This document shows positions 33,421 through 37,338 of a stretch of 64,000 nucleotides of DNA, piece after piece. The DNA is from Adineta vaga. Lineage: Eukaryota; Animalia; Rotifera. The notes beneath the pieces were generated by a model. It did no database searches. It was given only the letters and a program-made list of their open reading frames with translations, and had not been told where the DNA came from. Each line of letters begins with the position of its first letter. Positions within the stretch are counted from its first letter, which is position 1. The stretch covers positions 4,588,001-4,652,000 of the forward strand of contig CP075496.1 of NCBI GenBank assembly GCA_021613535.1, given 5' to 3'. A program made the translations under genes and the position numbers.

Positions 33421-35055
33421 TTAAAATAATATAGAATCAGGTATCATGTTTTTTGATGGATCAAATGATTGAGGAGTCATACCTATTTCAGGAGAAAAAG
33501 GATAATAAACAGAAGCCAAATGATCAATTTGGTCGTCGGATAAAACATGAAGTGAACCAGTTCTATCATCACCATCATCAGTCATTTGAGATGAAAAACT
33601 GGATACTCGATCACGCATTTCTTCGAAGAATGTTTTTGATTCTTCTTTCGAACTATTAACCAAACTGGAATAAGTTGATTGTTTTGAGGAAAGAAGGAAT
33701 TGATCATTAAAATCACTCGTTCGTTTAATTGGTTCAATAACTTCAGGTGAAAATTGATTATTTGTTTTACTAAAAACTCCAGCTGGCAAACTTTCTGTAC
33801 GAAGTAAACATGACATAAGTAATGTATCTGATGAATTTTTCTGTTGAGATTGTTTGAGATTGTCGATAGCAACAGGTTCTGGTACAATTGATTTCTACAA
33901 GTAATTAAACAAAGTCTCTTGATATTTCTCTTTATAAAACAAAACTAGGAATATTATACTATTTCTGGAATGATGACTTGTTCTTGAACAACATCGGATA
34001 GTGATTTTCCATGTTTACGTTGTTCATGGATTTCATTACTAATACGTTCAAGATTTTTTAGTGATTGTTGATATTGCATTTTGGCTTCGTTAACACAATT
34101 TTCCAAACCAAATACTTTACGTTTATGAAACTAGAAATCAATGATCGATCAGATGATATTAATATTCATTTTTCTTACTTCTAATTCTTTATTAAATTCG
34201 ACTTTCTTCTCGTAGTACGGTCTATAACAAATAAATAAATCATTCAAATATATAAGAAAAATCAAAAGAATATCCGTACTTCGATTTATTGATTGATTTT
34301 CGTGAATCTTTTTCTAATTTTTCTACTAACATTTCAATTTCAAAATAAACTCTTTCTGCACGTTGTTGATCAAAATCAGCCAAATATTTTTCTTTTTCAG
34401 CATCTCCAGCCTACAAATAAATTATTCTTACTCAATTACCAAAGTAAATCCATAAACGAACTTTTTCTACAGCTTGACGATAAGTTTCACTCCATGCAAT
34501 TGCATTTTCACTAGATATTCCTGCTTCATCAGCATGATCTGCCTACAGAAAACAAAACTATCTTCATGAAAATTAACAAAATCTATTATTACTGAAATAA
34601 TAGCTAATTCTTTTGCAGCGACATGTAATGCTTGAGCACGTTCAAATCGATGTTTTGCTTTCGTTAATACTTCTTTAGCTTCTCGTAGTTTAATTCGAGC
34701 TTCATAATAACTTCGTGATTTAATAACAGCAGAACCAATACTTTTTTCAAGTTGAGCTAATTCTTCATGTGATATTTCCAAAAGTTCTTGCAATGTTTTT
34801 CGAGCTTCCTACATAAAGAAATGAAAAATTTTTTCTCTTTGTTCAATAAATTACATCAAGTTGTAATTCTAAATGATTGATTGCTTCATTCGCATAATTT
34901 AATCGATCGAGTTCAATCTATAGAATAATAAATATGATTAGGAGAGAGAGATATTATTCAAAAGAACAGACTTGAATTCGAGGATCGAGTTCGTCATCAA
35001 CTGATGGACTTGATAAAGCAGATGATTGAGTTTGATTATCTAATGAATTCTCCAT
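33421..35055 (-). CDS. SH3BP5: SH3 domain-binding protein 5 family (Rab11 GEF; SH3BP5/parcas)
   Basis: DDELDPRIQ|IELDRLNYANEAINHLELQLD|EARK...IGSAVIKSRSYYEAR...FERAQALHVAAKE...SINKSRPYYEKK...YQQSLKNLERISNEIHEQR. Confidence 0.92.
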
Positions 35056-35155
35056 GCATAATCTAGAAGAAGAAAAAAACGAAAATGAATTTTATTTCAT
35101 ATTATTCTCATATTACAAAATATTTAACAAATAAACAAACAGAAAAAGAGAGATA

Positions 35156-36964
35156 TTAAGAATTAATCTTTTCGATTAAATGATCCATTTGTTCAGTGAA
35201 ATTATCATCATCATTATTTGCAAAAATAAATGACCATTGTACATTTGTATCTAACTGACATTCGGATTCTATCGTATCAACAGTCCAACCTCGTTGTTGT
35301 CGGACATTATCTGATGCATTGATACAGACAAGTAATAAACGATCATGAAAAACTTGTTGAAAAAATTCAATTTCTTTCGTAAATTGAATACCATTGATAA
35401 TCCATAATGGATTTGATGAACATAATTGATCTTTTTCTTCTAACATCTTTTGACATAAGAATGTTGGATCTTCACAGTATTTATCTTTTCTCCATCTAAA
35501 ATAATAATTATAAATTTCTTTTCATTTAAAAAACAAATCAATGGACATACTTTGTTATAGTTGCTTGGGCAACATCTGTACAATTATGTGTTTTTTCATA
35601 TTCATGTTTTAGAGTTTCATTGATATTTAAGAAAAGAGCAGGAAGTTTTTCAGCCAATTTTGTTCCGATATAAGTTTTACCTGATTTATCTTTACCCGAA
35701 AGCATAATGACCTTTTTCACGTGAGAGTATTTCTCTGAATCATTTGTATCAGATCTAAATTTTTGGTATTTCAGATAAAAAAATCAATAGAAAGAAGTCG
35801 AGATTTAGTAGATTACTTATTTTCAAAATCTAAATTGAGCTTTCCTAGAATAAACTTCATAACACGATCACATCGTTCATGAATAACTAAAGTTGCTATT
35901 GAATCCATAGATGTTTTCTGTAGATTAACAATGACTACTTTTCCACCATTTTTCTTTGTTTTTCGTGGTAGATCTCGACAAGGACGAATTTGTAACGATG
36001 TTCCTAGACATAAACATAGATCTGCTTTTCTAAAAAGAAAAAGTAAAGATAAAATAAAAATTTTATTTTGTTTTCAGACATCTACATTTCATATAACTTA
36101 CGCACAATGTTCTTCAGATAGTTTAAGTGCTGGTTCCGGTAAAGCATCTTCCCAATCCAGAACAGTATCGCGTAGTTTTCCGCGACATGATAAATTCTTA
36201 TTGCGTCCTTTCATAGAGTTACAAATATTACCAGTTCGTTTACGACAATAAGAACCAACACTCGTAGGACGAATAATCTATAATAGATATTTTCATTAAG
36301 AAAAAGTAGGATAGTAATCAGTGAAACTCGATTTAAATCTTTCTGAATGAGAAGAGCATACAAATAGTCCATGAGTTTCGGTAAACAATGCATTTCGTTT
36401 TCAAACAAACCTGTGTATGACAAACTTCACATTCTTCTGAAAAAACATTTCCATGTAATTCTGCCAATTTATCTAGCGGTAAACCAGATCGATGATGAAG
36501 TCCATCAATATTCTGAGTGATAACATAATGTAAATAATTGCTTTCTTCTAATCGACATAAGGCTCGATGTGTATAAGTTGGTGTTGCTTTCTCGAAGCTA
36601 GTATTGAATGTAGGTTTTTCACCACGTTTTTCCAATGTCCAAACACCTAAAGAATAAGTTTTAATGACGAAATATATATATTTTACAGATGAATCAAAGA
36701 TTATAACCATTAGGTCCTCGAAAATCTGGAATACCGGCATCAGTTGATATTCCAGCTCCAGTAATAACAACGGTATGATGACTTTGACGAATCATTTGTT
36801 CTAATTGATTTAATTTCGCTATATAAATGAATAATTAATTTAAGAATATAAACATTAGAATTAATTTTACTTTCTAAATCATCAGTTTTTTCAGTTAGTT
36901 CAGGCATACCAACTTTACCTTTGTGAGGAAAATATGAGAGACTTTCGGCATAGGATAAACTCAT
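35156..36964 (-). CDS. SIRT6: NAD-dependent deacylase sirtuin-6 fused in frame to a C-terminal phosphomevalonate-kinase-like domain (about 450-460 aa, 7 exons)
   Basis: Sirtuin part: [61 protein letters not shown], four Zn Cys, [27 protein letters not shown] 62-nt intron (35816-35755) links it to [28 protein letters not shown]...EDPTFLCQK...RQQRGW...ESECQLD (animal PMVK-like). Stop at 35156. Confidence 0.88.
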
Positions 36965-37338
36965 TTTTCGATCACGTTTTGCAATTAAGTCAAATGAATG
37001 AACGACGAACGAACAGAGCGTGTCATTTCTAAATGGTCCAAAAATAAGTATCATTACAAACATTATAGACAGGTGTCGCTCGCAACAAGAGTATCATTGC
37101 CAAAATCGAATATATATATATATATCGATACAAATAAAACATTTAGATAATGATTGCATGGTTTTCAATAGTGTGCAAATGTACTATCCGTTGATATATG
37201 GAAATTTATACGAAGCAGTTTTCAATAAAATTATTTATGTTAAGAAATAAATGTCAAGAAAATTGTACAAGCAAGAAAAAACAAACAAACAAAGTGCACA
37301 ATGCTTAAGAAGAAGAAAAAACAGTTTTTTCTTTTCAA

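Follow-up and report, generated by a model that had tools for sequence, protein, structure and literature searches.

An expressed SIRT6 gene of the rotifer Adineta vaga with a degenerate, probably inactive tail derived from phosphomevalonate kinase

In a stretch of 64,000 nt from the genome of Adineta vaga, a bdelloid rotifer (assembly GCA_021613535.1, contig CP075496.1, C4:4588001-4652000; referred to here as the window, in which positions without a chromosome prefix are counted), a frame resembling the sirtuin SIRT6 runs on the minus strand into one resembling phosphomevalonate kinase (PMVK), with a short intron between them. The locus raises the question of whether the two frames form one gene, whether the intron decides which product is made, and whether the kinase part still works. 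An initial annotation had proposed a chimeric SIRT6, switchable by that intron and coupled to a nucleotide- or metabolite-binding module. The data described below indicate that the locus is a single expressed gene for a SIRT6 ortholog with a folded, PMVK-derived tail, which is now degenerate and has an intact twin on chromosome 1.

The gene was modeled as seven exons (36964-35156; Table 1) separated by six GT-AG introns of 52 to 133 nt. The GC content of the introns was 12 to 29%, and that of the window was 30.6%. The exons sum to 1,374 nt, or 457 codons, and the predicted protein was a 100% match to database entry P0252, "hypothetical protein I4U23_018533 [Adineta vaga]," of 457 amino acids. 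The model was searched against Pfam exon by exon, and the joined protein was searched through P0252. Exons 2 and 3 matched SIR2, while exons 6 and 7 matched P-mevalo_kinase (profile positions 1-44 and 66-113). On the whole protein, both profiles scored above their cutoffs, SIR2 with 98.1 bits (cutoff, 24) and P-mevalo_kinase (PF04275) with 40.7 bits (cutoff, 33.8; profile positions 1-113), so the C-terminal region does match the PMVK profile. At the boundary between the two parts, exon 5 ends ...GAA AAT AA/GTAATC (35817/35816), the junction intron ends ...ATTTAG, and exon 6 follows in frame with the split codon AA+A (K), exactly the junction that had been proposed.

Transcription was assessed on contigs of four runs from four studies (X1, X9, X11, and X14), among 14 public runs holding the stretch, over the region window:34600-37400. 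Run X9 was genomic and gave no joints. Contigs of X1, X11, and X14, from three studies, skipped all six introns at the coordinates of the model with CT..AC ends on the plus strand and were therefore taken to be cDNA-type contigs. Contigs of X11 and X14, which come from two studies, spanned the junction 35754/35817 and did so for both haplotypes; a second joint, recorded as "skips 65 + TTG," was the same junction on the other haplotype, with the synonymous change 35819 A>G. Fusion as one gene with one spliced mRNA, as the initial annotation had it, is thus the point on which the Pfam matches, the cDNA joints, the identity to P0252, and the structure predictions given below agree. Two haplotypes were visible in both the DNA and cDNA contigs and both were expressed; their differences included positions 35703-35705, 35819, and 35848.

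Table 1. Exons and selected introns of the fused gene, in window positions
Feature	Positions	Strand	Content and evidence
Exon 1	36871..36964	-	ATG 36964-36962, SIRT6 N terminus; aligns from human SIRT6 residue 1; joint 36818/36871 in X1, X11, and X14
Exon 2	36708..36818	-	NAD-binding motif; Pfam SIR2; spliced joints
Exon 3	36411..36646	-	Catalytic His133 (LAELHGN), zinc ligands Cys141 and Cys144; Pfam SIR2, 56 bits; 3zg6 alignment; joint 36277/36411
Exon 4	36102..36277	-	Zinc module, Cys166 and Cys178; spliced joints, 3zg6 alignment
Exon 5	35817..36029	-	Last sirtuin exon, end of core; aligned to human residue 272
Junction intron	35755..35816	-	62 nt, GT-AG, phase 2, exactly at the domain boundary; removed in X11 and X14, both haplotypes
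Exon 6	35551..35754	-	Linker, first strand, and P-loop SGKDKSGKT of the PMVK-derived domain; Pfam P-mevalo_kinase positions 1-44
Intron 6	35496..35550	-	55 nt; joint 35495/35551 in X1, X11, and X14
Exon 7	35156..35495	-	Remainder of the PMVK-derived domain; stop TAA 35158-35156; phmmer against 3ch4, AF2/Foldseek

The junction intron had also been read as a regulated switch, splicing giving a 52-kDa chimera and retention a clean 31-kDa SIRT6. On retention the frame would indeed read AAT AAG TAA and stop at once in A. vaga and in Adineta ricciae, and a minor isoform could escape contig data. However, no contig retaining the intron at 35816-35755 was found among the X1, X11, and X14 contigs, which were spliced as predicted; coverage of the bin that includes the intron matched, in these RNA-type runs, the value expected from its 32 exon bases, so exon edges account for that depth and no retaining contig is present. 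The immediate TAA is moreover the G/TAA of the donor consensus in phase 2, and it recurs in A. ricciae because the donor consensus is the same. The stop is not conserved beyond this, since Rotaria would read 8 further codons on retention and the environmental contig L021 would read 18, and many relatives lack the junction intron. The stop of a retained form would also lie far upstream of the last exon junction, which is the usual mark for nonsense-mediated decay. Two isoforms are thus unsupported, a switch is very unlikely, and the junction intron is one of ordinary constitutive splicing.

A separation into two cistrons was considered next to this, in which the TAA terminates SIRT6 and trans-splicing of a leader to 35754 yields a second, PMVK-like mRNA whose translation begins at the VIMLSG Met. 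The organism does trans-splice, as seen from the next gene downstream, where X1 and X11 cDNA contigs carried the spliced-leader tail ...ACTTACCAAG (the reverse complement of the loose letters) joined at the acceptor 35064/35063, and one X1 contig ends exactly at 35754. At 35754, however, no leader appeared among the loose ends listed, and cis-spliced joints from two studies were found there on both haplotypes instead. The candidate start, codon 294, is the one in-frame ATG available ahead of the first strand of the kinase-like domain, and it falls within that strand, which a start there would cut. It varies within the species, where one haplotype encodes Met and the other Val (35703 and 35705), and most relatives have Leu there. 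Some relatives also carry both halves in one uninterrupted frame. The two-cistron reading is already largely refuted and retains next to no likelihood.

The sirtuin half was assigned by alignment. An end-to-end alignment of residues 1-273 with residues 1-272 of human SIRT6 scored 300 bits; SIRT7 gave 157 bits and other sirtuins at most 115 bits. It contains the GAGIS NAD motif, catalytic His133, the zinc ligands Cys141/144/166/178, and the conserved N terminus. By these features it is SIRT6, a class IV sirtuin, with a complete core; as a member of that family it would be an NAD-dependent deacylase and mono-ADP-ribosyl transferase acting on chromatin. It was the sole close SIRT6 copy in the A. 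vaga assembly (100.8 Mb searched, six contigs), the next sirtuin loci being 54 to 55% identical over exon 3. These two loci, C5:1686195-1686407 and C6:2215462-2215674 (L006 and L007), have long open frames of 342 to 372 amino acids; they are not SIRT6 ohnologs of this locus and have no linked PMVK domain.

For the C-terminal half, phmmer matched exon 7 to human PMVK (PDB 3ch4) with an E value of 3.3e-11 over chain residues 81-191. An AlphaFold2 (AF2) model of residues 276-457 reached a predicted local distance difference test score (pLDDT) of 91.6, and its top Foldseek matches were silkworm PMVK (7xnd) and human PMVK (3ch4), with template modeling (TM) scores of 0.77 to 0.82. Together, these results indicate that the tail is PMVK derived and has kept a fold like that of the nucleoside monophosphate (NMP) kinases. 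Its degeneracy was judged on alignment columns at least 85% conserved among 36 to 37 canonical PMVKs, with human numbering taken from the 3ch4 alignment and the P-loop. In this comparison of conserved columns, the A. vaga tail had D in place of R18, T of D23, T of K69, Q of R73, Y of R84, G of D108, Q of R110, F of R111, and C of R130, as well as a 10-residue deletion around K69, while K17, K19, K22, K48, D87, R138, and R141 were kept. The P-loop, SGKDKSGKT, departs from the basic SGKRKxGKD of PMVKs, and the substrate and catalytic residues K69, R73, R84, D108, R110, R111, and R130, whose columns are 85 to 100% conserved in the canonical set, were all replaced. R18, K69, and R111 were missing in 10/10 bdelloid fused copies, and R84 was missing in 7/9. 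The PF04275 scores followed the same division: 131 to 133 bits for stand-alone bdelloid PMVKs and a fused protein of the acanthocephalan Pomphorhynchus laevis, 63 bits for the Rotaria fused copies, and 40 bits for those of Adineta.

Mutagenesis of human PMVK by Herdendorf and Miziorko (Biochemistry, 2006 and 2007) reportedly assigned R110 to catalysis, R84 and R111 to the binding of phosphomevalonate, and R141 and the P-loop lysines to the binding of ATP. Set beside this, the pattern of lost and kept residues suggests that the phosphomevalonate site has gone and that the nucleotide site is partly retained, and the tail very probably no longer phosphorylates phosphomevalonate. A true bifunctional enzyme, with the tail still an active phosphomevalonate kinase, would fit the PF04275 score above the cutoff, the retention of the P-loop lysines K17, K19, and K22 together with K48, R138, and R141, and the fully canonical look of the P. 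laevis fusion. Against it stand the replacement of nine near-invariant positions, including both arginines of DxRR and R84, the deletion that takes out the K69 region, and a canonical PMVK elsewhere in the genome, and it is given only a very slim chance. Of the proposed coupling of a sirtuin to a nucleotide- or metabolite-binding module, the PMVK-like domain of NMP kinase fold stands, but it is a degenerate PMVK copy and not a working metabolic module. The decay of the fused tail also differs by bdelloid lineage, L021 being without a P-loop (FGHDQSRNG in its place) and L016 and L018 without 25 to 35 residues of the lid region, with the frames of all three still open to the conserved C-terminal helix.

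The canonical PMVK was found on chromosome 1. A genome-wide profile search gave exactly two PF04275 loci, the second being C1:8047319-8047960, a gene of two exons encoding 196 amino acids from its own ATG, with none of the conserved residues lost (SGKRKCGKD, YKENYRKDMIK, WGEEKR, CDIRR, VRIEAS, and RQTRGW). Intron 6 of the fused gene is at the position of its sole intron and of one intron of the P. laevis gene, and the downstream neighbor of the chromosome 1 gene is a paralog of SH3BP5, the gene that comes after the fused one. The surroundings correspond as well: in tblastx comparisons, window 25000-47800 was colinear with C1:8041000-8057400 over ∼22 kb in the opposite orientation, and chromosomes 1 and 4 are homoeologs from an old tetraploidy (PMC8494291). 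In the chromosome 1 block, the shared flanking genes are 750 nt apart, and no SIRT6 relics were detected upstream of the PMVK, all tblastn and blastn matches having E values of >0.1. The ohnologous block shows differential gene loss, with SIRT6 on chromosome 4 only; window 39.6-45.7 kb had no counterpart in the compared stretch of chromosome 1.

Genomes other than this one carry the fusion as well, and searches for it bore out the proposed architecture in further bdelloids and one acanthocephalan. A profile built from junction-spanning pieces detected fused SIR2-PF04275 proteins, annotated as unnamed or hypothetical, in A. ricciae (458 amino acids), Rotaria magnacalcarata (462 amino acids), Rotaria sp. 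Silwood1 (463 amino acids), and Rotaria sordida (partial). The same profile search gave stand-alone PMVKs of 196 amino acids from Adineta steineri, Rotaria sp. Silwood2, and R. magnacalcarata. Five environmental rotifer-like contigs, among them L016, L018, L019, and L021, also carried the fusion, and several further environmental open reading frames read through the junction; in L016 and L018, the last sirtuin exon and the entire tail form one uninterrupted frame. The gene order Myb gene-fused gene-SH3BP5 is kept in A. ricciae and Rotaria, and the stand-alone locus keeps the order PMVK-SH3BP5. The junction intron was at the same place and phase in A. vaga, A. ricciae, R. magnacalcarata, L019, and L021 and was missing in L016, L018, P0240, P0241, and P. 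laevis. As intron 6 is missing as well in L016, L018, P0240, and P0241, this looks like a joint loss of the two introns nearest the 3' end. In P. laevis, the fused protein KAI0988437.1 (P0057; 490 amino acids) has one stop-free exon that covers the final sirtuin segment and continues into the P-loop of PMVK, and its kinase half would appear fully catalytic. A word-indexed search with its kinase region matched only itself, and one with the whole protein found only ordinary SIRT6s among the best 120. The P0266 cluster, which grouped loosely with P. laevis, was considered as a monogonont PMVK and set aside, its contig neighbors being unrelated and without a sirtuin. Other odd PMVK architectures were noted in passing, namely, a 502-amino-acid protein with a Cys- and Asn-rich N-terminal region of 370 residues before a canonical PMVK and a 341-amino-acid protein with two tandem PMVK domains (P0010/P0017 and P0014).

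The suggestion that the fusion had not been described held in part. No paper on a PMVK fusion with SIRT6 or another sirtuin, or on the architecture of SIRT6 in rotifers, was found in a literature search, but public proteomes already contain the gene models, with both Pfam domains, as hypothetical or unnamed proteins.

In a tree of the kinase domain, the bdelloid sequences formed one clade (100/100), which divided into one subclade of stand-alone sequences (99/97) and one of fused sequences (100/100), with Adineta and Rotaria in both; the kinase half of P. laevis fell outside on a long branch. Since both clades hold both genera, the duplication is placed in the bdelloid stem. This matches the timing of the tetraploidy, reportedly older than the bdelloid families (PMC8494291, citing its reference 12). 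From these relationships we infer that fusion came first, duplication second, and the loss of the chromosome 1 sirtuin half last. The fusion of SIRT6 and PMVK, or at least their head-to-tail adjacency, would have arisen before bdelloids and acanthocephalans split, and the ancient tetraploidy would have doubled the locus in bdelloids. The chromosome 1 copy would then have lost its sirtuin exons and stayed an intact stand-alone PMVK, which, being intact, would do the work of the pathway. The chromosome 4 copy, that of this window, would have kept SIRT6, its kinase half losing the arginines, lysine, and aspartates of true PMVKs. One ancient fusion followed by these steps requires two events and is the history toward which the evidence leans.

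The same gene and the same dead domain could also have come about if SIRT6, PMVK, and SH3BP5 had been close neighbors, perhaps one polycistron resolved by spliced-leader trans-splicing, and had undergone two fusions. Once the tetraploidy had left one PMVK copy redundant in stem bdelloids, cis-splicing from a donor at the SIRT6 stop to the leader acceptor of PMVK would have begun, making the junction intron a former spacer; acanthocephalans would have acquired a separate fusion by read-through. Several observations fit. The junction intron lies exactly at the domain boundary with its donor overlapping the TAA, P. laevis is without it, and forcing all fused kinase halves into one clade was rejected by the approximately unbiased (AU) test (P = 0.017). 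The chromosome 1 PMVK has a TTTTAG acceptor 10 nt before its ATG, within ∼12 nt of the place matching the junction acceptor as measured from the shared KYSHVKK codons; this TTTTAG may be an orphaned cis acceptor that became a leader acceptor, or the reverse. The adjoining SH3BP5-family gene (Pfam PF05276; ATG at 35055) is trans-spliced and begins ∼92 nt past the stop of the fused gene (minus strand, 35063-35158), with an AATAAA at 35096-35091 between the two, and a tight spacing of ∼30 to 120 nt between the PMVK-domain gene and SH3BP5 was also seen at the chromosome 1 ohnolog, in A. ricciae, and in Rotaria (L001:2088-2140, L024, L025, and L026). The spacing is operon-like. Operons, however, have not been reported in rotifers (PMC7986045), and this history takes three events (loss of SIRT6 on chromosome 1 and two fusions) against two for an ancient fusion and a fission. 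Homology of the junction acceptor with the pre-ATG acceptor of chromosome 1 was tried and rejected, the MAFFT alignment of the two being unconvincing and an ungapped by-eye match of 20/27 (L019 against chromosome 1) being too weak in AT-rich DNA. Fusion twice over is therefore a credible history but the less probable one, and the preferred reading remains a single ancient fusion.

Selection on the two halves was compared next. Between species, the ratio of nonsynonymous to synonymous substitution rates (dN/dS) was 0.05 to 0.13 for sirtuin exons 3 to 5 and 0.22 to 0.58 for the kinase-like exons, with dN of the tail 4 to 5 times that of the sirtuin part. Within the species, coding variants among haplotypes and strains were 0 nonsynonymous to 10 synonymous in the sirtuin half and 8:3 in the tail (Fisher P = 0.001); two of the eight nonsynonymous variants share one codon, and one turns Met294 to Val. 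A stop codon could arise in the last exon along 67 one-step paths, and under neutrality the chance of its staying open over a branch of 0.25 substitutions per site is ∼0.004. Yet every fused copy seen was open, at least 12 from Adineta, Rotaria, and environmental bdelloids; as all are open against this 0.4% neutral expectation, some selection for a full-length tail is likely. Judged by these comparisons, the tail is an open domain under relaxed purifying selection that is predicted to fold well.

A functionless remnant on its way out, persisting as harmless or because truncation would disturb the SIRT6 message or fold, would explain the near-neutral ratio within the species, the elevated dN, and the lineage-specific and ongoing loss of conserved residues, as in the P-loop of L021 and the 25 to 35 residues missing from L016 and L018. 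It accounts poorly for frames that have stayed open in at least 12 copies since before Adineta and Rotaria split, when the last exon by itself should acquire a stop with P > 0.99 for every 0.25 substitutions per site, for a dN/dS of 0.22 to 0.58 rather than 1, and for the high pLDDT of the predicted fold. This explanation was considered unlikely, though it is a good deal less remote than an active kinase.

Six haplotype differences were observed within 112 nt of exon 7 (35327-35438), along with a 13-nt insertion polymorphism behind 37185 and, in run X9, intron deletions of 3 nt and 1 nt (36063 and 36332). A (TA)n microsatellite at 37105-37130, where several genomic contigs from X9 and X14 break off or fork, lies ∼150 nt upstream of the SIRT6 ATG.

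Several points weigh against the reading of the locus as a SIRT6 gene with a retained, degenerate PMVK tail of single origin. Rare forms drop out of contigs, and minor retained or trans-spliced forms may exist. The description of the tail as dead rests on conservation together with the reported mutagenesis of human PMVK. The full-length AF2 model consisted of two confident domains joined by a linker with a pLDDT of ∼66, and with a predicted TM score (pTM) of 0.68, nothing points to a fixed contact between them. The absence of the junction intron from P. laevis and the long outside branch of its kinase half make two independent fusions possible. Lastly, the 8:3 ratio is near the neutral expectation, and the tail in A. 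vaga may be nearly unconstrained.

The tail would now serve SIRT6 as a noncatalytic module, which might act either through nucleotide binding by the kept P-loop and R..RGW or as a structural or interaction domain. A more specific proposal is that the P-loop and R..RGW lid form a ligand sensor for ATP/ADP or a phosphorylated isoprenoid intermediate, which would tune the deacylase activity or chromatin binding of SIRT6, with the P. laevis protein being a two-enzyme chimera. This is speculative and improbable; if true, it would tie isoprenoid or energy state to DNA break repair and chromatin control in animals that survive desiccation and radiation.

SIRT6 is a much-studied regulator of DNA break repair, chromatin, and lipid and sterol genes, with a C-terminal tail that is normally disordered. 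In one animal clade, comprising the bdelloid rotifers and at least one acanthocephalan, it has instead a folded tail that comes from an enzyme of the sterol/isoprenoid pathway. On the preferred history, the locus would show a two-enzyme fusion dismantled after genome doubling, one copy holding enzyme A with a disabled B and the other holding B alone. It offers material for asking how a pseudokinase tail affects SIRT6, whether the acanthocephalan protein is bifunctional, and whether, in rotifers, spliced-leader trans-splicing makes it easier for genes to fuse and to split. The locus does not represent a novel type of system but a SIRT6 with a lineage-specific, enzyme-derived, and apparently disabled tail.

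Compared with known systems, the sirtuin half shares with human and other animal SIRT6 (PDB 3zg6, 3k35, and 7cl0) the N terminus, NAD motif, His133, and zinc cysteines, without large gaps. Vertebrate SIRT6 continues into a disordered C-terminal extension of ∼80 residues, which carries a nuclear localization signal, whereas the A. vaga protein has a folded P-loop domain of 180 residues. With animal-type PMVKs (PF04275; human 3ch4 and silkworm 7xnd), the tail has in common the fold, the profile match, and the intron position of the PMVK in its own genome, but the true enzymes are free-standing, and the nine residues from R18 to R130 that are replaced in the fused tail are near invariant in them. 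The stand-alone bdelloid PMVKs (the C1 locus, A. steineri P0261, and Rotaria P0262 and P0264) form its sister paralog, sharing KYSHVKK before the first strand, the intron, and the SH3BP5 neighbor; they differ in their length of 196 amino acids, their own ATG, the lack of an upstream sirtuin, the retention of all catalytic positions, and their scores of 131 to 133 bits. The P. laevis hypothetical protein has the same order of SIR2 and P-mevalo_kinase, but its kinase half is canonical (131.6 bits, SGKRKCGKD, and DARR) and only 26% identical to that of A. vaga, its linker is longer and unrelated, and the junction intron is lacking. Pseudoenzyme domains retained after duplication are a general class, and the tail resembles them in being a disabled copy of an enzyme fold beside an active paralog. 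It differs from them in being joined covalently to an active enzyme to which it is unrelated.

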